Shown here in pieces: positions 1-64,000 of a stretch of DNA of 64,000 nt. The stretch covers positions 4,187,609 through 4,251,608 of the forward strand of contig NW_018404492.1 in NCBI RefSeq assembly GCF_002113885.1, written 5' to 3'. The stretch's first letter is position 1. Every line of letters starts with the position of its first letter. Under the pieces are notes generated by a model, which saw only the letters and a program-made list of their open reading frames with translations, was not told where the DNA came from and ran no database searches. This DNA comes from Mizuhopecten yessoensis. Its lineage: Eukaryota. Both the position numbers and the translations under genes were made by a program.

Positions 1-3000
1 GCATCAGGTAATGAACCACGTGAGTTTTTACATTTTATTTATGACTTTAACGGAAAACTGAACTAACCACTGAACACATTTGCGGACAAATTCTATAATA
101 CTTGTATGCTTTAAACTTGACAGGAATATGTTTTACCGCTATATGTATCGGTTACCTGTAACTGATTTTGATTTAAAGTCACATGATCATTAAAAGTAAA
201 AGCATTTTGAAGCATGCAGTCATTATATTTTGTTCTTGTCATGAATACAACGTGTATAAAACTCGAACACCATATTGTTGTGCTACTTTAAGTTGCTTGC
301 GAGTCTTTCGTTAAAATGCGACATTGAGTATACTAGCACACGCACTGGCTCCTGTTTCGATATAATATATGTTTATTCAGTATTGTTGTAATACTTATAA
401 AAATTTACTGGTACGTATATGGCAAAATATAATATAACATGTACCAATGCAACATGTCATTTAAATATAACATTTATTTACTATGGCCACATTAGATAGT
501 TTATACAAATTTGGACCGAAGGCATTACTGTTTCATGAACTTTTGACAATGGCAATAGTCCATTTTAGAAACAGACATATTACGGTGACCATTCATGTAC
601 TATGAAGGTAGAGGTGGCCGATCAGTTTTATCTACGGTGTTACTGTAACCAAAAACCGACCACCTACATCCCGTCTTCCCCCTCACAAACCCCCACACAC
701 TTTTGCTACACTGTCCTATGTGCCCATGGCGACGTCATTCGTACGATCACCCGTGAATGTTCACACTTTCAAGGTGTGGCCAAGTGATGAATACACTTCG
801 AAATTGCCAATGACGGAATCATTCATCAAATCCAATTACGACCACACACCATGGCTACCGGCGTCTTAAGTAGGAGACACATATACTAAACCACCTACAC
901 TGCAATACATCAGCCGTTAACAAGGACTAACTGTGTCACCTAATGATGACGAATGTAGGGGGGTATACTTATATACGAAAAGTCAACACGGGCAGGTACG
1001 TAAAGTCCGAGCTGTTTCCAAATGTACCAAATCAGTCAACATCTCCTGTATGTACATATAAGTAAACACCTCGAAGGTTTCGGTTCGTGTGGAAATTAAT
1101 TTTATCCCTATATTCTAGATGTAGGTTGTGTAGATACATAAGGTCACATGTAACCTATAATACCACCACTCCTGGGTCTAGTCGTCCGTCTTCATTAACA
1201 AACGCAGTTGTGTCGAGTCCACAATTTTTGGTTAATGCCATCTGCTAACATGGTTGTCCTTCAGAGCGGTCGTGGTACCACGAAACCCCGTGGTCGGAGT
1301 GACCTGCTCCAGGAAACTGTTTGTGTTAAGTGAGAGCAGTGATGCCCCGTATGCGCCTTTGTATTAATGTCGTTTCAATCTTAATCTAGGAATACGACAC
1401 CTTAGCACAGGAAGTACTATGCTTATTCGTATGCTTCACCAACACTATTATTTTTCTAAATAATAATTCACCAGCGACAGCTCAGAGCAACTGCTTTCTC
1501 AACATACAAACATATTGTTTCCTGATACTATAACTGGTACATTGTAGAAAAATATATAACATTACTAACGATTTGTTGACACACAAACCATAGTTATGGC
1601 ACACATTTGCAGTGTAATGCAATTACTCATTGACACATGTGTACACTTCTTCGAACATTGGATCGCGTGGCAAATGAAGACAATTTGGTGCATATATTCT
1701 TCAGTATTTCATATACTGCTGTTTCCAATTTAAATTTTGGAACAGATCTAAGGCAGCACCATAAACAGTATGGTGTGCCCATCTGTTACGTTGTAGTTCT
1801 AGTTTTGGCTCGCTTTCACTCCTTTTCCGATGTTTGGACAGTCGGTCGAGAATATGTCAGACGCGTGAACAGTGGGACTAGCTTCCTTGTGATTTATGGA
1901 CAGCCGGACCAGCTTCCGCCAGACTTGTGTACAGTCGGTGTAGCTTCCGTATGTCTGTATTTCACGGGTCAAATATAACCACATTTCAATGACTGATACA
2001 AATGCAAGAACTCCATGGAAAAAGATAATCCTTTTTAGGAATCACTTGATAGGAAATTTTAACTCTGTAAATTGAGAAATAATTATAAATACAGGAACGT
2101 CCCCAACTTTATAATTGATCTATATTTAACAGCTTTATATCACATTCGTTTGTTTTATTATGTATTTTTAAATACATGTAAATACGATTCATTGTCGTAG
2201 ATGTGCATGGTGCATATAAATACCAACCAGAATAAGATTTTAATAACAGAGAGAGCTGAAATTTAATGAAGATATAGTACGTGGTATGAAAGAACTACAC
2301 AAGTGTGTTCTGTTAAGCTAACAACTACTAGCAAATTTATTTTGCCTTCAATAAAACTACTTCCATCTTCAACTGTATCCTAACCATACTAAGCGGATAT
2401 CGGTCCAACATGACTTACGGTATATGTCAAGTACATGCAGCTACTGTCCATCAGTTCGCCCATGCGTACTTGAAGATTATTTGACCGACACGTACATGTA
2501 CACCACAAGCGGCAGCGCGATATAGGAGGTCTAACTACATGGCTGGCTCACAAACAGATCGGCATGTCAGCTGTTTTACCGTTTGATTACCGGCACGTAT
2601 GCCTGGCTCGTACTGTTTGTTTATCGGCGCGAGATCGGAATTTAGGATGAAAGGGATCAGCTGACAATGAGTACGGCCCTGCTGGATTGTTTGTTGTCGA
2701 TAACACCGATTCTTAAGATAATACGACAATATGGAACTCTCCCATCCTCAATTATCGGTAAACGACCATAAATACACGTGGTTGATACTACATCATTGAT
2801 GCTGTATGTGCTGTGTTTGTAAATATACAAAACGTGTATATGATTTATTTAAGTGATAAAGGTCATTACTATTATTGGAAGATGTCGACAAGGGTGTACA
2901 TGTACGTACACACAAGAGAAGGCACTTCCGGTATTTCTGTATTTCCTTACTACGTCACGGCTGACTCTATCTGTGACATGGTCAGCAGCCGTTGTATCTA

Positions 3001-3507
3001 ATCTGACTCCTTAAAGAGAATTCGTGAGGCTAGTGACACACCTAAACACTAACTGACATGTAAGTCAAAGTACTAATACTGATATTATAAGCAAATCCTT
3101 GTACATGTAACAATTCATACATATTTAGTTTGTACGGTGTATATATTGTCTACCGATAGTGTTTTATTCAGCAGAATTACACAGAACAATACAGTGAAGT
3201 GTATCAAGTATATTGCATAATCCTACAAAAACGCCAATTTCAGCATTTTCCTTTTTCGTCAATAAGTATATGATTTAATCATCTTATACCTACATGTACT
3301 TTAGAGAATATAACTATACCATCCTTTGAAAGCTTTTTTCGTATTTAGCAGAAAAGTTTTTAATATTATCCAAAAATTAGCCGATGTGCATGTATATCAT
3401 ATGTTAATTATTATCAATTTATCCGAAGTTAGAATCCTAGTCCATTACGTCAATGAATATAATTCGTATTCAATGTACAGAATGTGAAAGGCTGTATTCT
3501 TAGTTAC

Positions 3508-3812
3508 ATAATAATAATTCAAGGTTCTTGTAATCCGCTTTTTCCTAACCTATTTCGTAGGTCGTCTCAAAACGGTTCACAAATTATTATCCGTGGTTAT
3601 ATGGCCTTTGCTACCAGCCAATATCTTTCTCAACTCCCTTGAGAGAATACAGCCGGTGCTGCCATTTCGGCGCTCACAGCTAGCGTTCAACAATTCTAGC
3701 AGTGTCAAACCACATACTCATTACAGCAGAGTAGACTGGAATAAGTGGAGTAAAGGATCTTGCTCAAAGATACAGCACAGTGTCATGCCGTGACTCGAAC
3801 CTCAACCCTTCA
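3508..3812 (-). mobile_element. tRNA-derived SINE, Deu/Nin-domain-like family, copy 1
   Basis: Reverse complement aligns with 31323-31607. B-box GGTTCGAGTC at 3792-3801 (minus strand); (ATT)n tail. Family assignment is from recall of the motif, not a database search. Confidence 0.8.
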
Positions 3813-4812: not shown

Positions 4813-7800
4813 ATATATATGCTCCCGTTTCACTTTGATGGAAATGCAGCTAAACGCCAAGTCTAACCAAAGTCAGTAACGCGACATATATTGGTTACAG
4901 TCATATGGCGGTGTACCAATTATTGTGTGGTGTCTGCATACAACTGTTGATGACTAAAGGACAGGCAATAAAAGAGGAATAGAACAAAAAACACGTCTAA
5001 CCGCACAAATGGAGCGAACTGCAACGTCTGACCAAATCAGTGAAAGTGGAAAATATAGGTCAATGTGACCTACATAGCCCATGATGGTGCAGTAATCCTG
5101 AAGTATCTGCATTTAAAGTTTTTATCATGAGACATTTTTCTTGAATCAGAGACATGGAGATTAACGCAAAGTCTAACGAAGATATGAACGGACGAACGAG
5201 CGAATCGATAGAAAGGAACATTTGATGTTCCTTCCATCTATTTGTCGGTGACATAATAAATAGACCAAACATTCATGGGAAGACAAAAACAAATACAAAA
5301 GGATATATCTAAGACATGAATAGCATGCATGTTTCTTTTGTCTCTAACAGGTGTTACATTAGGCAGTCGGATACACAGTTCAACCTGTGTAACGTTACTT
5401 AATAACCGATTCTGCTCCGGGTTATATTCAACATGTATAATTCAATATCACCGATGTACGTTAGTCTTAATATAATTTTACAAATCGAAACGAACTCAAC
5501 ATATATACCATTAGTTTTAGCTTGAATCGTTTAAGCATTATTCATCTTCATTAAAACATGTCTAAACTTTAGCTTTTCAATAGGTTTAGACATTTCGATG
5601 CTCTTGTGTTCTGCATCAAGGGCGTAAGTTAGGCGGTACAATCTATTACTACTTCAAAACTATTTAACTTAATTGATACTTTGCTAATTTTCTGAAGAAG
5701 AATTTGGGTAACTGAATAAAAAACTGTTTTTATATTACATCTTATGTCATTTCCTTGCGAAAGTGAATGATGTTTGTGTTTTTGTCGACACAAACTGCTT
5801 GCTATGGTCTTTAAATGTATATAAAACCTACCTATGTATCATCACAACAAACACTCGAAAGACATGAAGGACGTTATTCAAGAAAACTATGCAAAAAGTA
5901 GAGAGCACCGAATTATTAGCTGTGACGTTACATGTAACATCACGGGAATTGATTTGATGAGTTATGGTTTGTGCTAAAAATCTATGAAACCAAAATTGTT
6001 AGCATAACACATGTTTGTCATTAAGGCAGGCCCATTTCTGTTTAGTGCTATCTTGGACTTCACATGCTTGTTCAAGCTACCTGTACTCAGTTCAATAGGA
6101 TTTTAACACATACACGTGTATCATGTAAAAAAACGTTTGCATATTAGTTGATGTGTTTTCTTTAATCAAGTTATTAAGCACATGTGATTTTTTTCTGGAG
6201 ATCTGGTTACATAATTGCACATGCTAAACCTGTCCATTATCCATTGCATCATACGTATAGGTGAGGAAGAAAGATTTAGATGATGAATTTATTATGCACA
6301 GGTGGTGTTACAGTAACTATAAAACCGTGTGTATATTTTTCACGAGTGTATACCTGGGTGGTCCAATAATCGAGACAATAACATATGCTGAAACATTACA
6401 CACAGCTGAAAGCCGCCACGTACTGTCATCGGCCTCTTACAACATGTATAAGGTTGGGAACTACGTTTTTGTTAATAATTTACAAAACAAACAGAGAACT
6501 TCAACAGTTTGCCTGTATTAATTTCAACGTTTTATATCTTTTCGTGAGGTATCAACCGTCGTTATATAAGATTTTCATAAAGATGTACCATGTGGAACAC
6601 TTTGTTATTGGCACAAAATGTACATCGTCTCTCTATCACTTAACGATTCCTTCATCATGTTTTGGTGAATAATGGGCACAGCAGCGAGAGATCTCAAATT
6701 AACTGCCCATCAGCCTTTCGATGTTCAATGTAACACTTATCTCTTATCATTGAAATTGCCATGATCCTTGATTGATATGCATGAACTACGTAGACAGTAA
6801 TCAAATTCACGTTGTTTTAACAATTCTTAGATAAGGACTGGTGTGTGAATTCATCATTGGGGTATAATAAAACAGACAGTGACATATTAGTTACGCTTGT
6901 TTATATCGATTATACCTCAGTATTGAATGTGATTGGAGAGTTTTGACAATTAAAACCACAATTGATAAAAGACAGATTCAACAAAATCTTTTATCATATC
7001 AGAACTGCACTTACATTAAACAACACACTAAAATGACGTGCTGTTTAGAAAGGAGACGAATGAAATTGTCGAGACAGTTCTTGAACAAATCGTTTCTTCT
7101 TGAGATGAGATAATATTTTTGGTAGTGTTATAACACTGGCTATTTTTGATAATGCACTAAACAACCAATATTAACACCCAGAGACGGAACAACATTGTAA
7201 TTATATTTGACTCGATTTATTTTTGTGTTTGCGCTTATTATCTGTTATAATAAAATTCAATTAAGGAAATATTCCTGGCGCCCTAGATGTGTATCCTGCA
7301 GTTCGGGAATTGAGAAAAAAAACATACATGCTGTTACCCGGTGAATGTTCGTACACGTAACAGGCTACTCATGTTAGTAAACCATGCAGGTTTTCTTTTG
7401 TTTTTCGTGCACCAACGCAATCAAATAAATATGTTGCATCTGTTGCAACACTTTGGTTGCTTTTGTTTTATCCACTTTTGAGTTTTTCCCTTTTTCTCTA
7501 ACGCCTTACTTAACCATACCTTTAACCTTGGTGTTTTCCTTTACCCAAACGGGAAAGGTAATAGGTTCTGTCCCTTGACCGCGACATACTAACAATGGGT
7601 GATGCGCTTTTACTTGACGTTCAGCTTTAATTTAGAGTGTAACGGTTAGGACTTGTAAGCCATGTGTTAAAGGAATGTTACTAGGATATATTTGTTGATA
7701 TCCTACTGTGACGGTACTGTAAAGTAGTCTTAAGTAGATAACTATTGTGGAAACCGTACTTATATAACCTTAGCTGTTACAAGGGCTTAAAAACTTAACA

Positions 7801-8868: not shown

Positions 8869-11800
8869 GTAAGTAGTACATATTTAGACTTCCATACGTT
8901 CATTGATTCTTGTGCTTTCTTCATTTCTTCAATTAATTAAGAAATCTGGGCAGCAGAATGTAAACAATTTAATAATGAAACTCGACAACTGGGAATGTCA
9001 AAGACGATGTACTCATTATTCGTTTGTAGGTTTACATACACTTATACACTATCACAACAAATGTATTGTAACATCTTCTGTTTCCAGAGTTCATGATACC
9101 CTTCTTTTTCTGTTATATTATCTCCTTGGGTACTTTTCTTAGGTATTTTTGTAACTAAATGCTTTTTTTGTCCTGTTAGGTTATAAATCATGATAGAACA
9201 AAACAAATGTACTGATAAAAATGTTACTAGAAAAACGTAGTGAGGAGAAAAGTTACTTAAAGGGTAGTTTGTCAACACAGATCAACATTTTATGCACCAA
9301 ATGGCCATTTCGTCGTTTATGGAAAAACTAGTGGTACTACATGAGAATTCAAAAGAATAAAGAAAAAACATGTCTTTAGAGATCGGAACTTACGAAGAAC
9401 ATTGCGAAATGAGGAAAGTGCATTCGAAACTTTTCATCACGTTGCAATGTTTTGATTTTTTTTCTTCTAATTATTGTTTTCTTCACAGTTTGAAATGCTA
9501 ATACAATACGTCAAATGTGAGAATCCTAGTAAAAAACATCAATGATTAAAATCTCAGCAAAACAAATGATATGTTAGGACTCTAGACTAAACTCGAGGTC
9601 ATCCAGCAAGAACAACAACCTTGTTACCTACTGGCCTACTGCACTAGATACAGTGTACAAAAAGTACGTGCAAGATGTAATACCAACTCATTATCCATAC
9701 ATGTTATTTAGTTCTGGCTGACGTCTCATCTTTTGAAAAAGTGTAGGTAACCTCTAAGATTGGTTCTGTGGGGGAGTGAACAGAAACAATTCTGATTTCC
9801 CATAGGAATCTAAAGTGCTTTGTTCGTGCAAGGTATACAATGTAATTATTTCTTACTCAAACAATTTAGGAGCATTGCTGCATTGTGTCTATTCGATATG
9901 TATCTGGCACATTGTCTGCTAGACATGCTTTCCAAATGTCATCCGAGGTCAAGCCCCCAACTGAATTGCCACATATTGTAATGATGAAATACGTGCATTA
10001 AGGTAGCAAACACGTTTTCTGGTAAATGTTCGATTTCACACATTCACCTATATCAAAAATTCCGTAAAAGCTTAACTTACTAACCCGGAATGTTTAAAGG
10101 ATAAATCAACAATATGGATACATATCAGTATGTAGTGTACTTTGCGTTCTAGGGTAATACAGGATGTGAGGGGAATGACAGTGAAGTAAATAGGAACTTC
10201 AGACTACGATAGATTATACACCGATAACAGTGACAGAGGATCAAGGAGTAATTTGCTTTTCTGCCCTGCTTTGGCAGATGGAGCAAAAACTCTGACCCGT
10301 TTTAACAAATACATTTGCCTTGTTGCACTTAGATCCGGCAAAAACATTGCTAAACTATTTACATTGATAGTATGGACCTGTGCTCCAAATGCTTTGAATG
10401 CTTTTTCGCCAAATATGGTATCGTTGTAATGAGATATATGACCTTTGCTGCAAAGGCTATGTCTTCAATGTTTTGCTGTCAACTAGCGTCAATTAGCTGA
10501 AGGAGGAAACACAAATGTTTACACGCTAGTAATCAATGTACTGTAATGTCTATATCAAATTGAACATGGCAAATACTCTCTTTGAGCTAGCAAATAAATT
10601 CAAGTTCCTTCCATGTTTGACGTTACTAGCTACAATGCTTTGTAATTTGGTAAAACTTCTATGCAAACGTGCATATATGATAATAATAATAATGATGATA
10701 ATATTTTGAGTTTCTTATACACCGCTTTATCACAATCTTGTTCGTAGGTCGTCTCAAAGCGGTTAAAAATGTATTATTCTTTGTTATAGGACCACATAAT
10801 ATACATGTGAGTAAAGCTCAAAAACATCGTTTAAAGTTATATGTATAATGTTTAAAATATTGATTATCCAGCGCAAACACTTGTTGTAACCTATAGAAAG
10901 CATGTCAAAAAATTGTTTTTTATCAATGTGTTAAATGTGAATATCCAGAAGTTTGACATGTTTTTTCCCATGCCGTACTATCATCCTTGTCAACTTATAT
11001 GGACCTTAGCAGAATCAACATTTTTCTTTTTGTCTTGTCCGCTTGATGGACATTAAAACAAACAAAGTATCCTCCTCCTTCGCCATTTGCAAAAGCTTGG
11101 ATATGTATCGTACCTTTCTACATCTGTCCTACTATGTCTTCCTCGGAAACATCTACCGTTCACCTCTTTTCTGTTTCGTAGCCATTCATAACATTATTTT
11201 GTTGGTGTTCCTTGAGCTACGCTGTAATATAATATCAAACCACCTTTGTTGGGATTCAGACGGTTTTTGAGGGCAGGAACATGTTCAACGCAGTATTGTA
11301 AGGACATACTTTTCCCTTCCTTCTAGACAATATCATTATATCTGAAGAGGATATTAAAGATTAACTGTGTTTACTTAATGATAAAAAAAACGTCCTGGCC
11401 CAGATGGCATGATACACAAGATAATAAAGAAATTAGCACCTTCTCTAATATGTCCTTTAACTTTACTTTGTGATAAGACTATTGAATCTGGTATTATACC
11501 TCTTTCATGGAAAACAGCTAATTTTAATGCAATAAAATACAAAGGTAAGGGTGCTCAAAATGATGTCTCTAACTATAGGCCAATATCTACTACATCATCT
11601 TTTAGCAAAATTGTTGAAAAAAATTTATTTAAATATATGTTTAATTATATGAAAGAATGGGATATCATAACGAAACACCAATCAGGCTTCTTACCAAGAG
11701 ACTCGACTGTAAACCAGTTATTTTCTATATATGACACTATTGTAAATAACTTGGGTCAAAATAATGAAATCAGATTTGTATTTTGTGATGTAAGTAAGGC

Positions 11801-14800
11801 GTTTGATAGAGGGGTTTTATTCAACTTTTAAGCATGTCAAATCCGGTGTACCACAAAGCTCGGTCCTTGGTCCATTTATTTTCTTAATCTATATTAATGA
11901 TATAACAGAATGTGTAACAAGTAAAATAAAACTTTTTGCATATGATACTTCTCTCTATGAAGTAATATACATCAATCAAAATGAAATTGCAGTGAAATTA
12001 AATAATGATCTAGGTAATATTAATGCATGGGCAACAAAATGGGATATCAAATTTAATTCACTAAAGAAGGAATCTGTAATCTTCTCGAGGAAAATGGAAC
12101 AAAATCATCTTATTTGGTAATGAAACTTTAACTAATAAACAAACTCATAATCATGTTGGTTAAACTTTTAGTAATGATGGGAAATGGACACATCATATTG
12201 ACAATATTTATGAGCTAGCTTATAAAAGAATTAATATATTGAGAATGTTAAAACACAAATTGGATAAGAAAAGTCTTATAACAATATATACCTCTTTTAT
12301 TAGACCAATTGTTGAATATGGGGATGTAGAATGGGATAACTGTAGTAACCAAAATAAAAATACTCTTGAGTCAATCCAGCTAGAGGCATTAAGAATTATT
12401 ACAGGATTACGTAGAGGGACCTCTCATTGTAAGCTTTATGCAGAAACTGGACTTGAATCACATTGTTGTAGGCGAAAAAATCATAAATTAGCACTTATGT
12501 TCAAAATTTGAAATAATGAATCGCCTAAGTACTTATAAGACATCATTGAATCATACCTTCTCAGCAATATAAATGTAAGATACCCACTAAGAAATAGCCG
12601 TATTTTCAATCCCCATTTCTGTAGAAGTGAGATTTATTTCAATAGTTATTTTCCCTCAATGTGTAGAGAATTTAACCTTATATCTACAGAAACATTAAAA
12701 GCTACTTCCCTTCAACAATTTAAAAATTTCATCAAATCTGATAATATGAACAATACTGAAGAAATTGCTAGCACATCTAAATACTATGGGCCAAGAAAAT
12801 TCAATATCATAATTTGTCAGCTGAGACATCATGCTAGCAACCTAAATAGTGACTTATATATGGATCATCTGAATGACACATCAGCATGTAGATGTGGACA
12901 TGAAAATGAAAATGCATTTAATTTTATATTTGAATGCCCACTCTATAACAACTTTAGAATGCAACTAGTAATACAAAATTCTCAATTTGGTATATCTGGT
13001 AATCATGATCATTTAAATCTAAAAACTCTATTAAAGGGATGCTTAATATGCAGCGCTGATATTAAGATATCCATTTTACAAAGTATCTCTGACTACATTT
13101 GTCAAACTAATAGGCTTGATATGTAATCTCAATCACAGCAAAACTTTACATTGCAAGTGATGCTATTATTTATAGTGTCATGATCACTCTGCTAATAAGT
13201 ATTGATACTGGTGTATATCTATCTTCACAACATCTCTGGTTTTGTTAAATAAATTTTAGGAGAATCAACTCCAATAATATACATGTATATTAATAATAAC
13301 TACATTTTCCTATATGAATCCATATCATATTCTGAAATTTTAAACAATGTTTATTTCTTGGTAACTTATCCTATATATCGAGTGGGTGGATGGTCAATGT
13401 GTTTGTACACAGGGACTTTTGGGCCTGTATCCCTTGGATTTTATGTAGGATGGGTTTTCAATAAATATACATGTTTTATTTAATTGTTAATATCTAAAAC
13501 ATAAACAGAAAATGATTTAAAAAAAGTTGTAAAATGTTCATTTCACAAGCTGAATTGGAGTTATCTCCCCTGTACTGTTTAATTGGATTGTTATGACAGA
13601 ATATATGTAATGTTTGTAATTAAGTTTGGAAAGGACTTGAATAGGTCTAGCCTGATGTCCAATCCAATTGACATATATAAAGTCAATACAATCTGATGAA
13701 ATGAAATAAGGATATCGAATATGTATGAATTTTTTAAGTTTGTCATTGTTTGGCTATTACAAATGTAACACCTGTAGCATGTTCCACATATATATAACTT
13801 ACGTAAGATACGTAAGAATCAAGGGCACGTTGGGCTATATTTAACACACCAGTATACAGAACCAGCAGGCCGGAATTAGTTTCCCTCGCTCTTTATATGA
13901 GAACTTACTTTAATGACATGTCTGAGGTGCAACATGCATTCTTCTACTGGAATACTTCAAGGGGCATAACTCCTATCAAAGAAGCGCTGCATTGAACTTT
14001 GCCGCGATTCATTGAACAACAAATAGTAAATTGAATAGATTTGTTATCGTTAAGATATCAGAGATAGTATTGCTACAAAATTATTATGATTTATTTAGCT
14101 GATAACCTACTGATGTTATCCATGTGCGTCACAAATTAAAGCGAGCTGTATCCGTCATTTGTAACAAAACAAAAGTGCAGATTTTTCATTGAAATTAAAG
14201 ATGTAACGCGTTATATCTTCAAACAACCGATACAAATGGTATAATTTCCGCGATTGCGAATTTGTAACCGACAATTTAGGAATAAAGTACGTGTAGGTTT
14301 ACTCATTTACATTATATCAGTTACAAGTAACCAATATTGAAGTTTGTCATCATGTCACCGAGTTGGTCACTCATTTAAATTAGTCTAATTAGTCTACAAC
14401 GTCATCTGTACTTGTTGATTGTATCGTGCTTTATCATGCGCTAAAACGGCATAAAAGTAGTTGTAAAAAGCGCATCAAAGGAAGTCATCGTTAAAGAACT
14501 ACTAGTATAACACTTTAAAACATATTCCGATTTCAACATAATGGATTAAGTTCCCCTGTCACCTTAGCCGGGAAATATGCCTTAAAACATACGCACGGCA
14601 GCGAACGCCTCACTTAAGATAGTCAAATATGATTATCCTAATAATAGCCGGGGTGGGGGAGGTTCGACCCTGTTTGTCTTATGAATGTCATCATTTATTT
14701 GCGATATTCGAGAGACGATATTTAGGGGGCGGCAGTGAGGGAATGGTGAGTGTAAAATTGCGTAAATATACATATACGAGTGTACCATGTGTGACTGCAT

Positions 14801-17800
14801 TAAATGTTATTGAAGTGAAACAATCATGCACGTCTATCTTGCTGCGAATCCAAATAAGGCAGTTGCAAGAGAAATAGGATTGACTTTCCGTTAGAGTTAC
14901 ACCATATGCAATTATTTATATCGAACGCGAATTTTCCCATATCTGCGGATTTCTGTCGTCTGTAAGATTAATGACTTATATACGTCATTGGCTTGACATT
15001 TCCTGGAGAAAAACTGTTTGCAGTAAAATATGTGTCATCTGTCTTTTTGTATCATGGAACGTATGTAGGTCATCAACTGTCTTACATACATTAATAATAC
15101 AACATTTATTTAGCGCACTATATAAATATATTATAACACGATTTGTTTGCCATATATGTCTTGATTAAATACGGATCAACCTTTGAATCTGTTATAGAAC
15201 TATGTTTCTATTGTGCTAAGACACACCTGACGCACTTAAGTCAAGTCCCGTTTCTAAGGAAGCTGACAATGCCAGCGTGGTATAATTGCCATAAAGTGTA
15301 TGCCGAATTCAATGTATGTATTGATTGAAAATAAACATTTCTTAAATTTGTTTTAACTGATTACTTTAGAATAAATATGGAAAGAATGTTACTGAATTAT
15401 AAATCCTGAAAAAACATTTCATATGCATGGATTACCCAGCTTCGTAAATACATGCATTTTACACATCAACATAATTCTTCGTATAAACTAATAACCGTTG
15501 TCGATATGCTTAGTATATAGGCGATAATTGTCAACACAGCATTGGCCCTTGCCACGAATCATTCGACCATTCCTCCATTCAACAAACATTTCGAGCTTTG
15601 GTCAGTATTGGCGGGATAATTTACCAATACATCGCGTATTTTAATGCTTCTTTTTATGAATCATTTTGTCGGAGTGAAACATAAAATGGGAACAATGATC
15701 TGATTTGGAATTATTTCATTTAGCGTCTTACCTTCAGCTAAGGACATTTAATGACTTGTCTCAATATGTGTAATGAATAGTTGTGTGCTGGGGGTGGGCG
15801 TCATGTGGGTACATTTGTCTACTTGCAATAGCCCATATCTGATGCCGACTTTATAGGGCTTCCTCACTGAACCAGAAAGTTTTGAACCACCGGATTAATT
15901 GCTTCTCGATGACGCAGGTCGAGGGAAACAGGCCATTTGTGGACCCCACCTCCTTTGGAAAATACTTTTGACGGTTGACAGATAAGCATAGTCTGCACAC
16001 TTTCACACCTAAATAACAGCTACAATTTGTAAGACAATTATAAGGATTTTAAGGTATGGGCGACCTTTCAAAACGAAGGCAAAACATAATGCATCGTCAA
16101 ACAAGGCGCTAGGAAACAAAAACCACTTGTTAGAAAGTAGACAAAAACTATACACATCATAAATATAACAAAGGGACAGCAGACTCGTTTTTCTGGCTTA
16201 AGTGTCACTAGGTAGAGCGCATATAAACGAATCCCAGATTCTGCAAAGAGATTACACATTAGTTACAGTTGACATCGTAGATTGTATCCTCTCAGGTTGA
16301 AACCCGGGGATTCAGATACACAGAACTTGGTTTATTTTACATGTACACTACTCAGAATTACGGCTAGCTAATAGTTTGCCCCTGAATGGTCGGTGAAAAC
16401 CCTTCTGTATTCAATGGCATGTTACAGTACGAGATAATAGACGTTGTACCAACTGCAGAATCGGGGGTCATGTGTGTCTACCGCTGTGGTCACATTGAAG
16501 AAAAAAATAACTGTGGTCTTGAACCACTTGTAATCTATATTTTTCATCTTTTTATATTCTTCTCACTCTCCTACCCTTTCTGTTTGGCACTCTTCCTCGC
16601 ATTACCTATTTATAGGACGTTAAACCACAATCAAACACATATCGAGTAGGACAGGTCATAGATAAAAGTATGTAGAAAGTTCAAATAGCTGAGTATAGTA
16701 TTTTTGATAGCAAATTCTCGAGGATATTTGAAAGTGCTTTAAAAAAAAAAAAAAAAAAAGATTAATCTGAATATGAAATGGAAAGTCTGGCATTGATCTT
16801 ATGCACGCCTGTATTACTCCTCTTATCAATGTTTCGAAACCCTGGTCCGCTCAAATGACATCAAATATTTCCCTGCAAACTGCTGATTACCAGACAAATT
16901 GAGTTTGATATTTTTGATATGACCTTTTTGCTTGCTTCAAGGGATTATTGCTAGAAACGCTATGCTAATCTAACATCCAGGGCGATATAAAAAGCTAAAA
17001 CAATAAAGCGTGTTCTGTATTAGTTGAACATGCACCAAGCGTATTCATATATCATTTGGGATTAAATGATTTCATGTGTTATACTTGCTTTGCAATAACA
17101 AATATATACCATGGAAATAATATTGAGGATAAATTACCTTGAATCTTCACAAGGGCTATCCAGGGATAACAACGATTTGTAATCTTGCCTAGAGGAGACA
17201 ATCTGTTTTCTTGATGTCAGGTGACAGAATCTGATATTGGAGGCACGTAAGGATGAAATTGACAAACACGCTGTTAGTTAATTTCGAAGAAAACAGAAAA
17301 TGGCATTCGACAGACTATTTTTGTCTCTAAATTACAAGTGAATGTCGTTTAGTTCATGTGTCCATCACATGCTGTGATGTTCAGCGAGTTGCAAACCTTA
17401 CTCTATGAGGCAAAGCTACTGCCGTGGCGGAGGATTAAACTGTGTACTTAAAACTGTGAGAAGGTAATTAAAATGTCTACAACAATATCATCTTGGTGTT
17501 TTTTTATTATTTATTTTCTATGTAATTTAATCGCAGGTCAATTAAAATGCCGAAAATACAATCTATCAGAACACAATATTAAACCAGAAATACTTATTTG
17601 CTCACAGAAATCAAATGGATGTACTTCATATGATGATAAAGTAGAAAGGTAAAATATGGGAAGGCAACTAAAAAAGGTACTAAAACCAGATGGGAAGAAT
17701 CAGAAGCTTTGCAAACGATTTCTGCATATATATATGAATATTAGTAATAAAAAAAAAGCTTTATTTATACAGGAAAACTTATTAAGATATACTCCTAAAT

Positions 17801-20800
17801 ATAAACATAATTTTCAATATGGCCCTGATGGCCTCCTTGTATGTGTAAAACTGTTTTTAAACTGATAATTTATAATAAAACGTATACAATGGTTAATCTG
17901 CACCTCTATAGATTGAAATCAGGGAAAGACCTATGCAATACGGCCCTGTCACATATTACTGTATTTCCCACCCTTGCAACTTCAAAACATGCCATGATTT
18001 CAACATCAAAAGTAGATTTAAGCCGCACCGGTTGGAAACACGGGCAATTGATCTAAAGTTCAACAGGTTACATGCTGATGCTTAGAACATGTTCTGTGGT
18101 GGAGATTCAATGTGGACATATACACTCAATAGGTGTAACAGCTATTTTTATTCTCTATGAAAATGCATATAACATTTGAGAGTGAAGATGAGAGTATCTG
18201 GTTATTTTAAAATCCACTCGAATTAAATGGGAATGTTGACACAGGCAATAATAATGCAGTCCACACTGTACATGAATACATACAATGTACATGTATAATC
18301 ATGAAATATCATCTGGAATTGCACAATGTCACGTAAGGTTTTAAAAGACCACTGGTACCGTTGGAGATATCATTAAAGATGTTTGGTCCCAGTCGTCTAA
18401 ATCACAGGCATGCGTCTACGATGACTATGGTTGACAAACAATTACTTATAATTCGTCGGGAACAAACTTGATAACAGTTGCCGTAAATTAAGAACGAAAG
18501 AAAGAATCCTTAATCAGCTTAAAAACCTACCCTTATACGTCTTGTTGTTCTGACATTTAACATTGGCCTTCTGTTGATGGTTGTGCCCTTTTTAAGCTCA
18601 AACAGAACCTTTGTTCAAATCGTTTTGCCCTAAAATACTTGGTTGTTATTTTTGCAATTGTTATTGCTATCATTTCGTTCGATATTGTGCCATCCCTGCG
18701 TCACCACTGCCTTCTCAAATTACAATATTGTGTTTTAGGAAAGCCTTTGCCTCCATGCTGCTCTATCGTTTGGCAAAGACTTCCATTATGTAACTATCTG
18801 TTAGGTGTTTAAAAATTATGTAATCAATAAACATGAGATACTTGTTGTCAAGTTGTATTATAATAGCAAGACAAAATAAACATATGATCATTATAGAAGA
18901 AATAATAATAGATTATATTTATCATGGAAAACGAATGATGTTGAGGACTTCTTGCATCTCATTCATCTTCCAATACTTTTAATTATGCATTCAACGATAA
19001 AAAATATCATTTAGCTTCAGAACTTCACATTTACCTTATAATCATGCCACTGCCAAACTCTATGACAATCGTGACGACCTCAGCTCCTAAGTCGTAAAAT
19101 GCATTATCCTAATTAGCTAATTAGCTCCTTCTTTAGAATACATGTGTAACAGTGCTGTCAAAATCAGGATGTTCATGATAGATGCTTCCTGTTGATAAAG
19201 TAAATAAACCATTTATCCATGTATTTTATCAAAGAGGCTTTAATCTTTAATAGCCTGACTGTTTATGTTGGTTGTTTTCTTTTCGTATCAATTTCTATAT
19301 AACATTGCTGGAATAAAAATATGATATACGATTGGCATCTACATGATGATGGTCTTAAAGAAACTGCATACTGCCTTTTTTTGTAGATGGAATCGCTTCT
19401 AAATCTGCAGTATGGATCTATCAGATACTGTCGTACTGATCATACATGTTACTGAGGTTGCGTTGACTTCGACTGTGTTAGAAAGGCGTTGATGGTTCTA
19501 TTTCTCCTTATATGCATATTTTCTTTACATTGCAGGTGATCTGGCGCCGGACGGCAGATCCCAATCCACTATCAATAGGCAACACTGTGTTTGTGGCAGA
19601 CGATCGGTATCACGTCAACTATATAGACTACAGAGTTCAGTGGGATTTATACATCAAAAACGTCAGTCGAAAAGACGCAGGCCTTTACGAATGTCAAGTC
19701 AGCTCGCGAGAACGAAATATACGACGAGTTGTTTTCTTAACGGTAATAGGTACGTCTTAAATGATTTTTTTAAAAGTTTCTTTTTTTCAATCTAGAAGTG
19801 TTCAATAATACGAGGGCCATACCATACATTTTGTCACTATTGTCAGGAGTCACATGCATGTTGTATATAACTTTCTACTACAATCCTTCGAAGTATCCCC
19901 CTTAGCATATACGCACTTTTACAATCGTGCTGTCCATGACGTAAACGCTGTGCGGTAGTCTCCCCTCGATATACTGATAAAACACTGAAAGGTTCCACGA
20001 TCAAGAGCACACCTAGAGGCGTTTTCAAGAGCGCGTTCTTGGTAGTAAGATAAACAGGAGAAAGTCATAGGGACTTAAATCGTGTGAATAGTGTGCCTGG
20101 CAAACAGTACTAGTTTCTCCTGCTACAAACACACTTGTACACTATCGCTTTTGTAGGATGAAGCATTGTCGTGCATTAACTCGATGTCATTCAACCCTTT
20201 CATGTATAAAATTGGCAGGCTTCAGAACTTCGTCTCTGTAAAATTTGGTAGTGATAGTGTCCCCTTCTTTGCGCAGTATATTGTAGTACATTTCAAACGT
20301 TTAGGCGTTTGGTCAGATGTCAGCGAAAGGGGGATTCATCGGGCACAGAACTTTTTTAGTATCAAGTCGTTGTAAAAATATGATGTGAGCCTAGCATCTT
20401 TCTTAATTATTTCTTTCACATCAGCAATGTTTTTCTTTGATGCTGCAACAACTGGCCTGTCTGGCCGTGTGTCCTCTTTGATGTTAACGTTACTATTCTT
20501 GAATTTGTATACTCATATGAAAACAGTTGACATTGCGACTGAAGATGTGCCTTTTATGCACAGCTCTGTAGGTACAATGTATCCGTTTTGGCAGTATGTG
20601 TAAAAAAAAAAACGTGTTTTGATATAGAAACGGTTTTTTTTAGTCTCAACCTTCATTTTAGCATTGAAAAGAAGCCACTAGTCATGAAGGCATACCATTC
20701 AATAATGAATAAGTTGGATTCAATGCAACTTCCAAATGTAACCTGTTTCGACATTGCCTGTGCGTATGATTTTGCGAAGGGAGATAACTATATTGTCATA

Positions 20801-23800
20801 ATTATACAAAGATACCACTTGATGAGATTTTACACTTTAATTGACACTACAAAAGAAATTATTCAAACAAACAAAAACGATCTGTAAGCAAAATATTATC
20901 AGCTCACGGTTGCTAGCGGTAGTCACAAGTCATGTACTGCCCTAGAGAGTCCCCATCCAGCTACCCGTTTTGCCTCATGTGTCAGTATCAACCCCCGATT
21001 CAAATCGAAAACAACGTAGATCCAACTGGTCCCGTCTTATATGAAACGTAGTCGAATAGCTAACTGCCATATCAAATTGTTTCGTCCTACAAGCCTCGTC
21101 TGGTTTCCTATCTAATTCGACATTCAATTACTGCAGCCACACATTCCAAAAGATGCAGAACCTTGAAATTTAACTGCTCTCCACTTCGACCTAGTAAAAA
21201 GAAGGCTGCCGTAGACTCGCAGTTGAGCCTGCGCACCGCGTCTAGACATTATTCTTCCGCGATGACGCATCAGAAAATTTAATAATTGATGAATTCGTTA
21301 ACAAAACATAAATATGACATTTTAAATATGGCTTTGTGTTTTGTTTCTACATAATTTGGCTGTATTGAACTATCAAGGTACAGCATCATGTTGTATTATG
21401 ATCCTTCAATGACGGACTATATTGTTTCACATTAGGTTAATACGTAGACTTGCACAAGCTCCAGAACCTGGAACAAACTATCAAAATGGACTTCACAAGT
21501 ACTAATTATTGAGAGAGAAAAACACGTTGATTGATATATAAGGTTTGAATCTTGCTTTGGTCGATTTCATGGGGTGATGAATTGTGTTGGTCTTGAAACA
21601 AATTAGTTCATGTTGAATTTGTTTCAAGACCAACTCAATTCATTACCCCATGAAATCGACCAATCCTTCAATAACATGTTCAATTCGAGTCGGATAATGT
21701 CGAAATTTGGCACGTGCATTGCTTTCATTTTTTAATCATTTTGCAGTTTGCCAAAGCTCTAAACTATTTTATCACCAATTCGTATGGGAGCTGATTGATG
21801 ACAAAATTCATTAAGTTCATTACATCCTATATGTATATATACTGTTTTACACCACTGTTTGCATACAATTGTTACAAAACCTTGCAGGTTCGGGTACAGA
21901 ATAGGTCTACGGCATACCAATTCATGTTATTATCAGAGGCGACTAAATTGGGCATCTATAAACAGGGCGGATTTCTTCTAGGTGATATGTAAAGGGGCGT
22001 TAAAAAAACCAAGATCGATTTTCCACCTCGATCGCAGCACTTAGAATCTACATCTTTTCTTTTCTAACTTCTGCCCTCTTTTCTTTCGACGGTGTCCCTC
22101 CGTCTATATGTGACCAGAACAAATCTAACAAAATAGCTTACTACCATTATCGACACATAAGGATGTTTTGTTCTGTACCTTGAAATCGTTACCTGTATCA
22201 AAGTCATTGTTGTTTTTGTACACAGACTTAAACCAAACATGAGCTTTATGTATATGCGGTAAATGAGAATATGAAAAATAAAAATAATGGTTCTATAAAA
22301 TTCATATTGTTCAAAGATATTTGCTCAAATTATGTACCACTCCATATTTTGCAGTGTTCTTAGCTAATGTACAAACATTCACGTGCTTGTTCCATAATAA
22401 GTGTTGCCAGCACTATTCCCCTAAGTTTTACGAGTATATATATACCGTAATGTAGTAAAGCAGTTTATTGATGTTTACCGTACAACTTTGCAAAACACTA
22501 AAATGTTAAATGTATAAATACTTCAAAAACTAAACGTTAAATTTGTTATGCCTCAAACGTTGCATTCTGTCATGTCACGTTACATTGTTTTTACTGTTGC
22601 ATTTCTGGAAGTGAGCATTGGCCCAACGCGCATTATGCAGTGAAACCAATACACTAGACAGACAACGGACGCGCAAATGATTATTTAAATTTCACTTTAG
22701 AAATGGTTTAGACAATTTGAAACGAAAACCCGATTTATAAAACGCAGTTTCAAGCGTCGATATGACCGAACACCATGCCAGATATCCTTGGGGGCAAACT
22801 TTAGACGCGTGTTTCTCGGTTTCTGCTGACTATTAATCAATGGCTGTGGTCCAAAGTGAGGGCTCCGTGTGAGCAGGCGTCTAGTTTTTTTTACGACAGG
22901 GATTTATTCACAGTGGAAAGCATCTTTGACCATTTTCCAAACTTCTACAGTTTAATGGAAATGGACCGCCTCAATATCGCACAACTACGATATACTTGAT
23001 AGTCTTGAAAGAGACTCAGTAGGTGTTTGAGAGCATTTGTCTCACGCAGGCTAGTGTTATGAATTTATAATCTGTTATATTATAGCCGCTGCGTTACCCA
23101 AAGATGTATGTGCTCGGTCATATGAAGTGGATCGGGACATGTGTTGAGTTCCGTCGTGCATGTATTAATTCTATTTTAGGTGATACCTAACAGTTCTATT
23201 ATATCTATTATCAAGCTTTTTGATATCTACCTTTTACCTAATATCTTACGAATTGCGATAACTAATATCGTATCCCTAACACCACACTGGCAGATATTTA
23301 CTGTATACATGCACACGGGTAGAAATTAACCTTATACCTTAGAGCAGGTTGACATTTACCTCAAACTTAACATCGGTTTGATTGATATTTACCTCATACA
23401 AATGTACCTACGTCATATATGTACTACATTAGTAAATATTTACCTTATAACAACGCAATGTAACACCATGATGGTTGACATTTACCTTATACATGTAGCT
23501 ACGTCATACTTGTACCACACTAGTGAACATTTACCTTATACCTAACACCACTATGCATGTTGACATTTACCTTATAACTAACACCACTATGCATGTTGAC
23601 ATTTACCTTATACCTAAAACCATAATGGTTGACATCAACCTCATACTTACATGTAAAACTACAATTGCCGATATTTACCTTTTACCTAGCACCAACCTGG
23701 CCGACATTCACCTTACACCTTTATTATCTAGCATCGCTCTGGAAGAAGTACAAAACGTAAAAGCGGAAATGACTGTTGCAAGACCTTTTACCATTACGGA

Positions 23801-53611: not shown

Positions 53612-54342
53612 TATATCACCTATTACCTAGACACTGTCGATACATTACGTAATGTTGTCGTAAGTACCGCCATATATCATGCTGCTCCGACGCAAGGGAC
53701 ATTTTACCAATGAACTTGTATAGTTTAATATCAATATTGTCGTCAACTAAGCTCAGTAAAGTATTTAATGCTGATTGTTTGCACAAAAAATCGTCCATGT
53801 TGTTTTAAAATGAAAACCATTTGTTCTTCTAGTTTAAATCATGTTTGCCCCAGTTTTTCAAGTAAAATAGAAAGCATAACTAAGTTTTTATTTTAAATGT
53901 ATCAAAAAAAATAAGAATGCTATCAAAATGAATATAATTATTTTAGCACTAGAAATTAGATTATCGCAAAACTAGCGTTTAGTCGAACAACTGTCCTTAC
54001 ATTACAAAAGCAACAACATACTGTACCATACAAATGTTAAGGTATCGACAAATTGCAAACGTTCATACCCACTTATCCTTACCGTATCCATGTAAAGAAA
54101 TTGCATGGTACTGGTACAGCTTAAATGTACATAAACAAACAATCGGTATGTGTTTTATAATTGTGTCGAACCACATGATGATACTCCATATAGCATTACA
54201 TGTATTTGTATAATATTTATCCGTGTGTAAATCCAACATGTACAGATTGATAGTGGCATACTTACGCTTACTGCTACCATCAATCAAATTGATTCCATCA
54301 ATAAGTGCATGTATCTCTGTCTTAATCATTTTGTTTTTATAT

Positions 54343-59800: not shown

Positions 59801-61158
59801 AGATCGAGACAGTTGTCTGACCTTAACTGTTATCTGCAGACATTCACAATAAAAAGACATCACTTTTTTCTAATAAATACTGTACATGTGCCACGTTTCA
59901 AGTTAATTACTCCGATAAAAGATGTGATGTTCATATTGCGACATAGCAAAAATCAATAGAAGATGTCATCATGCAAAACAGATTGAACTACATACATGTA
60001 AGAAAAAGAAGGAAGCGTGTTGATACCTGTATCAGCAACGCATATTAATTCAACTACACCTTACAAAACAAAAGTTTAGAGTGATACTCATAGCCCTTTC
60101 TGCATGGCAATTAATTTAAACTAAGAACGAATCTTTATTTGTCTAGGGCAATGGTGGTAAAACATAAAATGTACATTCGTATTAAAACTCTTAACTGTTT
60201 CCGAACTAACAGAAAAACAACTCGTTCTGTTCTTGTTGTTTTAGTTTTTTAAACTATGAACTAAAATCAAATGTTAAAACAAACAATCATCAATCATTTT
60301 ATTTAGGATATAAAATAAATCCCCAGTATAATTATGACATATCATGACATATCATTGTTTTGTAGGTGCATTCATTTGTATATCAACAATCACTTTTTCT
60401 ATGACGAAATATCGACAGAGAACAGTAAGATGACTACACGATACAATCTAAGCTTACTTCTAAGTCCAGTAAATAATAGACTGAAATTGTAATTTAAAAC
60501 ATTCAAGATAAATTATCTTCCTTACATAATGTTACTCCTCAAGGATCACGTTAAACCGCCTTACGTGGATAAAACAGCTGTGGCGGACAAGGCATTTGAT
60601 AGCGCCGACTTCTGTCTTTTAAAAAATCATTGTACGCATTACATAAATCTGAATATTTTCTTTTAAAGTCATTTAATTATCACGAAATGCCTGAATTACT
60701 ACTGGAAGTACGCGCTTTAGATAAATTATCTCAGTATCGCACACATGCATTTTTGATATTTCATTAACAGTCTCATGGGTAATAAAGCGGCTCCGAACAT
60801 AAACATTAAACGTTTCAACTATTTTCTAAACTGCAATACAGATTGTATTATCAGTAAAACTGACGATGGTTTCAGCTTTAATTTGAACATTTTTTCACGG
60901 AGTTGCCCATTACTTTAGTTTATCAGTATACCCAAGAGCGCTATGGGAATGTCCCTATCTGGAACCCACTAATGTATCAATTTGGTATTTACCACGCATT
61001 GATATGTCAAAGCAGTTTTCTCCCTAACTGAACAATATCAATATCATGTTGATGATTTGGGATTTTTTTTAAAGTTTTTTCTGGTACAATATGCATAAAT
61101 ATATACCCTTTGTTTCATACTCCCTTACACTCATTCGTACGCTCACTGCATTCACATA

Positions 61159-61468: not shown

Positions 61469-61945
61469 AAGCATGACTGAAATCAACATCATTCTCACAA
61501 TAATATCAAAATCACACTGTTGTCATCATCAAACTAATATCATTATCATCATCATCATAATCATAACTGAAATCAACATTATTCTCATACTACTATCATC
61601 ATCATCAAACTGGTATCATTTTCATCATCATATGACATTTAAATCATCCCCATCATTACCCAGACATTTTCATCATTACATTGACATAATCTTCTTCATA
61701 GTTATCCTCATCATACTCTCACCAATTCCATCAACAAGACACTAAAATGATCATCATCGCCATCATCATCATCGTCATAATAACACTGATTTCATCATTA
61801 TCATCATAATCACACTGATTTCATCATTATCATACTCATGCAATCATTAACCTCTAACTGATATCATCTTCATTGTATAATAATAAAATAATTATTCATC
61901 GTAATACAAAGTAGTTATCATATTGATGACATCATCATCATAATA
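61159..61945. repeat. (ATC)n microsatellite-rich region with ~90-110-bp higher-order duplications
   Basis: Pure (atc)n near 61432-61467; the block actgaaatcaacat(c/t)attctcac recurs at about 61365, 61476 and 61567. Confidence 0.9.
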
Positions 61946-62009
61946 CCAATTTTATTCACATGTGAGTGTTAATTTGCTAAAGCATATCATATCATCTCTC
62001 TCACACCTT

Positions 62010-62713
62010 TCATACTTTCTTTTGAAATACATTCTTAAATTTTTTAATGTATTCTGATGTTGGATCATATATATCAAAGATAAATGTTTCCTCATTAAAA
62101 GCAAAAGGAATAAACAAAACATCTAATAAAAACTCAAAGTTTGTAAATAAATTCTGAACTTGATTGCACTCCCATAGTGCATGCTCTATTGTTTCAATGT
62201 CTGATATACAAAAACAGAAGCGGCCTTCGTTAATTATTTTTACCAACATTTTCTCACCCTCGTTATATATTCCACCATAATGCACGCACATATGTTGATT
62301 ATTTCTTAACTTTTACTATTTTTTTCCATGCATTAAACACGTCTTTCCAAAAAGGATTTTTACTCATCATTTCACATTTAACAATGTGTTCCGTCCCACA
62401 TTTTGCTAAAATATTTAAATCAACATAAGTTTTTAAAATCTCCTGCCATTTACTTGATGTTGTAAAAAGTCTCCTTATCCATGTCAATTTTAAGGATTCT
62501 ATGAAAGACATCACATGCATCATTTTCAATCCACCTTGTGTTTTCTCCCACATGTCGCCCAGAAATAAAACCTGTCTGATCTGGATCAATAAATTTACCT
62601 AACACTGCTTTTAATCTACTTGCTATACAGTCTGATGCAATTGTATAGGTTATATTTAAAAGGGATATTGGTCTCCAGTTCTTGAAAACAATATCATGTT
62701 TTAGCGAAACCAA
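62010..62713 (-). mobile_element. Internally deleted L1/Tx1-like LINE ORF2 relic
   Basis: Three non-contiguous ORF2 blocks: NWRPISLLN...RLKAVL...DQTGFISGRHVGEN (RT N-terminus), GGLKM...LKLTWIRRL...FWKDVFNAW (post-RT), and CFC..ETIEHALWEC..V (C-terminal CCHC-type). Confidence 0.88.
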
Positions 62714-64000
62714 CTGACCATCCAGGAAGAGGGGGATTGGACGAAGCAGATTCCATCAACCCAAGATAACTGACACGGGCGACAACTCCACTACATGAGT
62801 CAAATATATACATACGTCAACAAGGCTTTGTTTATATGTCGATTGTACAATGCATGTATACCCCCCTGTCGGTGTCACAGCTGGGTAGTATGTCATATGA
62901 GAGGTATATTTCTAGGAAAGCTGTCTGGATTACGAAACCATTGTGCGAGTGAAGAGGCGTTGAAAGGATTGTCTACAAACTTTCTTTTCTAACCGTTTTC
63001 TTTTCTAAACAAGCTTCCCAAGGTCGCCGACCATTGTACTATTTTAATACATTGTATGTAGTATTGAATTATACTTATCGTATCGTTAACATGTTGACAA
63101 ACGATCAAGGCATCATATACATTTTACACTTTGAAAGACTTACCAATCGTTTTGTCAGCGGAAGTATTTTTCCAAAACGGTAACAGTATTTAACGCATGA
63201 GGTGTCAACTGATTATTGAGTCACTCAGGGGCTCATTTAAAGTGTCATCTCATCGGAATGACGTCATCTGGGCATTGAAATATGACACTCAATCCGATGA
63301 CATTAAATATAACGTCGATATCGTTTGGAAAATCAGCTAATGTTATAATGCTACAAATAGTTATAATGCATTACTTCATCTACACACCTCCATCACAAAG
63401 TATCGAATTTAACGCTACAGCCACACCACATATACATGTAAAATACGCTTAACAGTTCATATATACTAGTATATGTATGATTTTTATTCTTAAATTACAA
63501 ACGAATACATTAATAACTTAAAACATGAATAAACACAATAAAATAAGCATCCGCTATGTTGTTCTTTGTGATAATGTACAAAACACGTTGCTGATAAAGA
63601 GGCTATAATGTAGACGAAAAAAGATGTTTCAACATCCTTTTTGGCAAGGTATTTCGATCTTCAGGTGGTAGAAGGTGAATTTTTCTACAACGTGACTGCT
63701 ATCGTGTGGAAACATCGGTTTCCACGGGTTACCATACGATATTTGGGAACCCACAACATAGATTCTGTCTGAGACTACAGTGATCTGGACGTTCGAAAAA
63801 AGGGTGACAAGCTCCTGAAAATAGTGACGAGTTGTATTATGTACTGTCTGTATATGTACACAAAACTCCGTATTGTAACCTGTATCGTAGCCGTAACTAT
63901 ATTGAATGTATTGTACTGGTATCCTGTAAGAGTTTCGGACCTATTAAAGATGGCTACACGTAATCAGTGTATCAGATGTTCCGAAAGTAAAGAAGGACAT

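Follow-up and report, generated by a model that had tools for sequence, protein, structure and literature searches.

The window analysed here is the whole 64 kb stretch of a Mizuhopecten yessoensis (scallop) scaffold (C1165:4187609-4251608), from an assembly of 987.6 Mb in 82,659 contigs. It is probably the intron-rich body of an immunoglobulin (Ig)-superfamily gene. Two open reading frames (ORFs) on the + strand at 19512-19760 and 34370-34708, 15 kb apart, resemble Ig-domain exons and include motifs such as DAGLYECQV and DAGKYVCR. The window also contains the relic of a non-long terminal repeat (non-LTR) retrotransposon, a tRNA-derived short interspersed nuclear element (SINE) and 31 exact copies of the 8 bp palindrome TACATGTA, the subject of this report. 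A first-pass annotation had interpreted an excess of this palindrome as candidate scars left when Tc1-type transposons excised. All 29 of the sites it listed are at the correct coordinates, but those at 13280 and 39282 were overlooked. The features are listed below, with the strand where one was assigned.

2173-2180, TACATGTA site, exact match, unique flanks
2493-2500, TACATGTA site, exact match, one of five in 1.1 kb, in a stretch with an observed/expected (o/e) CpG ratio of 1.14
2897-2904, TACATGTA site, exact match
3102-3109, TACATGTA site, exact match
3291-3298, TACATGTA site, exact match
5929-5936, TACATGTA site, exact match
13280-13287, TACATGTA site, insertion, overlooked at first; 39 retroelement sister copies are without the insert
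16338-16345, TACATGTA site, exact match
18288-18295, TACATGTA site, exact match, overlaps TACAATGTA at 18281-18289
23490-23497, TACATGTA site in a minisatellite unit; the sister unit 23368-23449 has TACAAATGTA there, origin indeterminate
23648-23655, TACATGTA site in a minisatellite unit, probable 6 bp insertion at TA, by eye
24754-24761, TACATGTA site, exact match
25081-25088, TACATGTA site, exact match
28674-28681, TACATGTA site, exact match
28801-28808, TACATGTA site, exact match
33960-33967, TACATGTA site, exact match
34767-34774, TACATGTA site, exact match, 59 bp beyond the Ig-exon ORF
34899-34906, TACATGTA site, exact match
38263-38270, TACATGTA site, exact match
39282-39289, TACATGTA site, exact match, overlooked at first
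39478-39485, TACATGTA site, exact match
41636-41643, TACATGTA site, exact match
43623-43630, TACATGTA site, exact match
45565-45572, TACATGTA site, exact match
45938-45945, TACATGTA site, exact match
47504-47511, TACATGTA site, exact match
48501-48508, TACATGTA site, exact match
50792-50799, TACATGTA site, exact match
54197-54204, TACATGTA site, exact match
59993-60000, TACATGTA site, exact match
63433-63440, TACATGTA site, exact match
1538, 4499, 7938, 9836, 18281, 20573, 31218, 42792, 43542, 45877, 52563, 58685 and 63048, the 13 starts of TACAWTGTA
9649, 34574 and 57805, the 3 starts of TACASTGTA
1538-63056, span of these 16 one-base-longer words (TACAWTGTA and TACASTGTA)
11306-13709, + strand, non-LTR retrotransposon relic with reverse transcriptase (RT)-like ORFs; hosts site 13280; test family, with copies in the genome
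48085-48305, + strand, tRNA-derived SINE copy; family used for the genome-scale insertion test

In 100 dinucleotide-preserving shuffles of the window, TACATGTA was found a mean of 3.47 times (maximum 8), and the excess of approximately 10-fold claimed in the first-pass annotation is borne out. When both strands were counted for comparison with Markov models, the 62 occurrences observed exceeded expectations of 4.7 (order 0), 6.9 (order 1), 12.8 (order 3), 19.7 (order 4), 31.2 (order 5) and 49.6 (order 6). Enrichment therefore persists at orders 4 and 5, the backgrounds that had been suggested as a check, where it is 3.2-fold and 2.0-fold, respectively. The high-order models soak up part of the signal because the TACATGTA sites themselves raise the counts of ACATGT, TACATG and ACATGTA. 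Homopolymers aside, TACATGTA is the most over-represented 8-mer in the window at orders 1 and 3. A single repeat family was ruled out as its source, as the flanks of all 31 window sites are different; few sites in the larger sample described below lie in repeats. None of the 31 is inside the two recognisable Ig-domain exons, and to that extent the earlier statement that coding exons are free of the word holds. The companion statement about the retroelement (CR1) relic was wrong, as site 13280 lies within it. The density of one site per 2 kb is approximately 2.4 times the genome average of one per 5 kb, so that the proposed rate of one scar per approximately 2 kb fits the window but not the genome.

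Genome-wide, TACATGTA is present 199,406 times, compared with 94,922 for the reversed word ATGTACAT and approximately 35,000 expected from base composition. Two satellites have TACATGTA in the unit consensus, one with 20 units of 31 bp (L001:4680-5430) and one with 5 units of 92 bp (L004:4244-4611), and raw genome counts are therefore inflated by satellites. These two, with TACATGTA in every unit, were excluded from counts in a sample made up of the window and twenty 10 kb pieces of the same scaffold (264 kb; 207 kb after repeat masking). The masked 207 kb contains 67 TACATGTA sites, 9 times the number expected from composition, 5 times that at order 2 and 2.1 times that at order 5. Over order 1 the enrichment in the sample is 6.1-fold, twice that of any other word composed of TA, CA and TG steps save (TA)n. 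About a third to half of TACATGTA sites can be put down to ordinary compositional background in a genome rich in alternating TA/CA/TG words. Among the one-mismatch neighbours of TACATGTA, those differing by a transition are enriched 2.45-fold and those differing by a transversion 1.53-fold, which fits the slow decay of scars, though composition confounds the comparison. Another word, TAACGTTA, was considered as a second scar and ruled out, as 30 of its 36 sites belong to one 57 bp satellite in L018.

Sister copies of repeats were used in place of alleles to distinguish insertion from substitution; ten ORFs from the window had no exact match on record in an exact-protein index, and no allelic contigs were found by that route. 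In tandem arrays, the unit with TACATGTA at L004:4973 is exactly 6 bp longer than seven sister units (GCTA------TATTGC versus GCTATACATGTATTGC). The same 6 bp difference separates the unit at L007:3887 from more than 15 sisters (GGT------TAGGGG), and this unit was later duplicated to 4497. Insertions of the CATGTA-at-TA type make up two of the eight well-supported 6 bp insertions in the tandem arrays of the sample. The long arrays (L013:719-4116, L018:1-2480, L011:6922-9277, L014:3872-4705, L010:910-2142 and L007:2655-4664) have units of roughly 45-110 bp that are 72-91% identical to one another, and can serve as internal controls when small indels are scored; self-similar sequence makes up about 18% of the 264 kb. 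In the L012 array TACATTGTA arises through a 7 bp insertion, which was not counted, as a tandem duplication of TGTACGT is equally possible. In the window, the minisatellite unit with site 23648 can be read by eye as a 6 bp insertion (tatacc-TA-aaacc versus catact-TACATGTA-aaac), though the BLAST alignment is ambiguous.

The retroelement relic at 11306-13709 provided a further comparison. It has at least 39 copies elsewhere in the genome (82-98% identity), and relatives of its ORF carry RVT_1. A gapped pattern spanning site 13280 found 40 copies, 39 of which are without the insert and read CCAATAATATA joined directly to TAATAATAAC. Alone among the 40, the window copy is longer at this TA by 9 bases, CATGTA plus TAT. 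Matches to the relic are interrupted at 11811 and 13241, at which points other copies have approximately 106 and 84 bases, respectively, that are either missing from the window copy or were skipped by the search. Most of the comparable copies thus show CATGTA gained at TA, as had been predicted; TACATGTA mostly arises in repeat copies by 6 bp insertion, not by substitution or through conservation, with the two sites described below as exceptions.

A genome-scale test was possible with the tRNA-derived SINE of approximately 220 bp, which is represented by five copies in the 264 kb (48085-48305 in the window, L013:7307-7512, L018:6500-6730, L003:4463-4673 and L016:2566-2641) that are 76-83% identical to each other. 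A conserved stretch of this SINE, GGCAYRTCCT-(22 nt)-GGAYRTAAA, includes four TA sites in the 22 nt, and matches with interiors longer by 4 to 8 nt were sought. The pattern returned 107 matches genome-wide, compared with 1 for a reversed-pattern control, and 100 of these were listed. A net gain of 6 bp was found in 31 of the 100 listed. Exact TACATGTA replaces the consensus TA in 9 of these 31, about a third, and is distributed across all four TAs. Four more of the 31 have one-mismatch scars at the same TAs, namely TACGTGTA, AACATGTA and, in two copies, TACATATA, and a further copy with TACGTGTA at one of the TAs has a net gain of 7. The remaining +6 copies, apart from four to which we return below, are mostly local duplications or AT slippage. 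Copies of other lengths have TACAGTA (+5), TACATTGTA (+7) and, at a TA other than the main anchored one, TACACATGTA and TACAAGTGTA (+8) in the same frame. In the SINE junctions at C1812 and C5283, TACA is followed by sequence left unassigned.

One of the SINE TAs was anchored from either side, and the results were combined with those of the length search. At this TA, TACATGTA was found in ten distinct copies, TACATTGTA in four, and TACACTGTA, TACAGTGTA, TACATTTGTA, TACAGTA, TACTGTA and TACGTGTA in single copies. Beside the ten exact scars there are therefore approximately 10 variants of the form TA-CA(N0-2)TG-TA. As the intact SINE 19-mer has 1,604 copies in the genome, approximately 0.2% of the SINE copies with exact flanks on both sides have an exact scar and 0.5% have any CA...TG scar. 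Genome-wide, we estimate an excess of 100,000-165,000 TACATGTA over approximately 88 million TA sites (9% TA per base), or 0.1-0.25%. The two rates are of the same order, so that insertion is sufficient to explain most of the excess. We conclude that insertion at TA almost certainly drives the TACATGTA excess.

The junctions TACAGTA, TACATTGTA, TACACTGTA, TACAGTGTA, TACATTTGTA and TACACATGTA all retain the frame TA-CA...TG-TA. One-base-longer words in this frame are also enriched. In the masked 207 kb, TACAWTGTA has 35 sites versus 7.5 expected (4.7-fold at order 2) and 7 for its reversed word, and TACA(C/G)TGTA has 12 versus 4.3 expected; genome-wide, TACAWTGTA is present at 85,459 sites and its reversed word at 37,686. 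Both TACA(A/T)TGTA and TACA(C/G)TGTA also replace a TA in SINE copies. In the tandem arrays, in the retroelement and at the four SINE TAs, TA is found on both sides of the extra bases where the sister copies have a single TA. A target duplication of 7-8 bp is absent, TA alone being duplicated at every compared site, and a P-element or hAT-type footprint was ruled out on these grounds.

Ten 20 kb loci (L021-L030; 205 kb) from six long-read ENA assemblies (ERZ25069866, ERZ25073280, ERZ25069870, ERZ25073285, ERZ25074796 and ERZ26273167; entered as 'metagenome' and with eukaryotic contigs) were reached via relatives of the RT of the retroelement. Their nucleotide similarity to the scallop sample is limited to one 68% match in the RT. 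They contain 20 TACATGTA sites versus 5-7 expected, and 5 of the reversed word; these are small numbers. The word is enriched in four of the six assemblies, and L022:14654 is a clean 6 bp insertion at TA when compared with a related element from a different assembly (L027:3044-3177). TACAWTGTA is not enriched in the 205 kb. The ENA assemblies argue against an assembly artefact and suggest that the scar process is wider than this species.

We consider it likely, with a probability of roughly 70%, that most of the TACATGTA excess consists of germ-line excision scars of Tc1/mariner (IS630-Tc1-mariner) type transposons. We infer that the breaks were made by excision of an element that inserts at TA and has CA...TG ends. 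The source elements would duplicate the TA on insertion and end in 5'-CA...TG-3'. On exit of the element, each flank would retain TA and, as a 3' overhang, a few bases of the transposon terminus, and end-joining would then seal both flanks. The usual product would combine the CA of one end with the TG of the opposite end, converting an ancestral TA to TA-CATG-TA with 6 extra bases, and minor products would have 1-2 bases added, or one base lost, between CA and TG. The CATG core could form if both 2-nt overhangs were kept and filled in, or if a self-complementary 4-nt CATG overhang were ligated directly, in the manner of the 6 bp Minos scar. A 3-nt CAT overhang might instead be joined on AT microhomology, which would also explain A/T as the commonest extra base. 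The uniformity of the 4-nt core may point to unusual cleavage or repair.

Candidate transposases of the appropriate type are abundant. At least 835 candidate loci encode a Tc1/IS630-type DDE_3 domain (PF13358), and all 150 of the 150 scored exceed the Pfam cut-off. Many are in open frames, stop-free over 300-390 aa (for example C1926:149866-150300, C5138:2701150-2701575 and C2356:126824-127249), and to judge from these reading frames some copies may still be active. The excision-scar interpretation offered in the first-pass annotation gains support from these loci and from the end-joining-like junctions, alongside the persistence of the excess at high order and the recurrence of insertion at many independent TAs.

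Tc1-like elements usually have CA...TG ends. In Tc1/mariner excision the transposase cleaves the non-transferred strand at 2 or 3 nt within the element; 3' overhangs of that length stay on the flanks, and their sequence, enclosed by the duplicated TAs, makes up the footprint (PMC3878927, PMC7827188); duplication of TA with terminal bases left behind is the defining behaviour of the group (PMC3878927). Among published scars, the most frequent for Tc3, with its 2-nt overhang, are TACATA/TATGTA, and those for Sleeping Beauty, whose overhang is 3 nt, are TACAGTA/TACTGTA (bioRxiv 10.1101/659086). With Tc1 and Tc3 of Caenorhabditis elegans, which make 2-nt staggered cuts, the scallop process would share TA insertion and duplication, CA/TG ends and TA-x-TA end-joining scars. 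However, the main Tc3 scars keep the bases of one overhang, whereas TACATGTA keeps CA and TG together. The TAC(A/T)GTA scars of Sleeping Beauty and Frog Prince similarly combine overhang and duplicated TA, and one dominant junction is accompanied by rarer non-canonical ones (PMC7827188, PMC3878927, bioRxiv 10.1101/659086). TACAGTA and TACTGTA do appear at scallop SINE TAs, but there the 7-mers are minor; the dominant scar has 8 bases with a 4-nt core and is accompanied by the TACA(A/T)TGTA class. Four features of a Tc1/mariner footprint are found here: TA is duplicated, the frame is CA...TG, the junctions vary as in end-joining, and transposases of the family are encoded in the genome. A 6 bp excision insertion is a likeness to Minos, a Tc1-family element of Drosophila hydei, for which Arca et al. 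in 1997 reportedly described a net 6 bp footprint made up of the TA duplication and four transposon bases. The ends of Minos presumably differ from CATG. We found no description in the literature of a genome-wide build-up of Minos scars. Excision alleles of 4, 6 and 8 bp are on record for Minos (PMC6980720).

Several observations weigh against an origin by Tc1/mariner excision. The core is not of the textbook length of 2 or 3 bases. In the masked sample TACATA/TATGTA are at 1.04 times expectation and TACWGTA at 1.3 times, and neither TACATA nor TATGTA was found among the listed +4 SINE copies. As the former pair is not enriched and TACWGTA only weakly so, the dominant 4-nt scar is not the textbook form. 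In four of the 31 listed +6 SINE copies (C4385:4406-4452, C5403:32095-32141, C5031:120396-120442 and C123:375808-375854), ACATGT separates two Ts as an insert one base 5' of TA (GCTGTACATGTTAATA); these may go back to one event that was then copied, or the process may at times miss its target. SINE copies with one shared scar could also descend from a single scarred master copy. However, one such copy cannot explain scars at four TA positions with many junction variants. In the sample, A is favoured at -3 and T at +3, where 56% of the sites have T, but the flank signature ANN-site-NNT was dropped as a transposase target preference, as it is present at 18.4% of sites genome-wide versus 20.1% for the reversed control. 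Finally, a terminal inverted repeat scan of the 264 kb and genome-wide counts of two termini found no resident element with TA/CA...TG/TA ends that could be tied to the scars. Among the candidates rejected were L010:3777-5421, which ends in two TACATGTA sites with 13/16 matching inverted end positions and has no transposon features, and L005:1280-4194, which has inverted CACAATATG ends and no transposase ORF. A miniature inverted-repeat transposable element (MITE) with the end TA followed by CACTGCATCC (L010:6404, L007:9587) was ruled out, as the exact terminus is found once in the genome, and CATCWWCTTTTATTATT, which adjoins a SINE TA, has only 9 copies, all in the same SINE composite.

The missing source element, the off-target ACATGT copies and the unlikeness of the scar to the canonical Tc3 or Sleeping Beauty form (bioRxiv 10.1101/659086) would all be expected if the 6 bp insertions at TA are real and have another cause, such as DNA transposons of another superfamily that duplicates TA, integration that was aborted or reversed, or breaks specific to TA into which repair puts a fixed filler. 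We regard this as unlikely. The duplication is of TA only and never of 7-8 bp, TA duplication with retained terminal bases typifies Tc1/mariner (PMC3878927), a member of the Tc1 family, Minos, has a 6 bp excision allele (PMC6980720), and Tc1-type transposase genes, many of them open, are abundant here. Somewhat less probable again is that TACATGTA arises mainly by point substitution under a compositional or mutational bias towards alternating pyrimidine-purine words (TA, CA, TG), a form of cryptic simple sequence. The reversed word ATGTACAT is itself approximately 2.7-fold above base composition genome-wide, TACATACA, TATATGTA and like words are 2.6-3.1-fold above the order-1 expectation, many genome-wide sites are in ATATACATGTATAT-like contexts, and at two informative sites, L012:4143 and L018:9960, a single substitution is what separates each from its sisters. 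Against this, TACATGTA has twice the enrichment of any other word of the class save (TA)n and is still enriched 2-fold at order 5, and most informative sites are clean 6 bp insertions, which a substitution bias cannot create. Word bias as the main cause is already contradicted.

It is very improbable that TACATGTA is a palindromic protein-binding motif under selection, comparable to the oomycete promoter element bound by a MYB-related factor. The word is a perfect palindrome, the identical 8-mer is a Phytophthora promoter motif (PMC11134190), and five of the window sites are clustered within 1.1 kb (2173-3298), around a stretch (2380-3000) that is CpG-rich. That stretch, with a GC content of 43% and a CpG o/e of 1.14 (0.87 for the window), may be unmethylated or promoter-like. 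The cluster, however, has no significance once the scan along the window is allowed for, and most of the approximately 200,000 sites are found in satellites, SINEs and unique DNA of introns or between genes. Moreover, sites arise de novo by insertion within satellites, SINEs and the retroelement relic, and these insertions already contradict a selected motif.

Excision scars of DNA transposons are textbook knowledge, yet they are usually deemed rare and too variable to be seen in bulk sequence, and a literature search found no paper on a genome-wide excess of TACATGTA or of any excision scar. More tentatively, excision of one or a few Tc1-like families could be a leading source of insertions of at least 5 bp in this genome, and apparently in some other invertebrates, with at least 150,000 recognisable scars at approximately 0.2% of TA sites; we hold this to be about as probable as its opposite, or slightly less so. 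If true, the scar count would be a direct fossil record of cut-and-paste traffic. If the excision-scar interpretation holds, past activity could be counted directly, and dated from scar decay, beyond the copies that stayed. Indel models, alignment and motif discovery for this animal group would then have to allow for a sequence-specific insertion signature. The scar would also add two codons in frame and so could alter proteins without breaking them.

A second palindrome, the cyclic AMP response element (CRE)-like TGACGTCA, has 15 sites in the masked 207 kb versus approximately 2.6 expected at order 2. In addition to loci in the sample, it is present in the window at 4634, 44288, 45429 and 63259. 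The copy at 45429 is part of an inverted end in a small element resembling a MITE (45389-45547); this element has a sister copy at 31772-31959.

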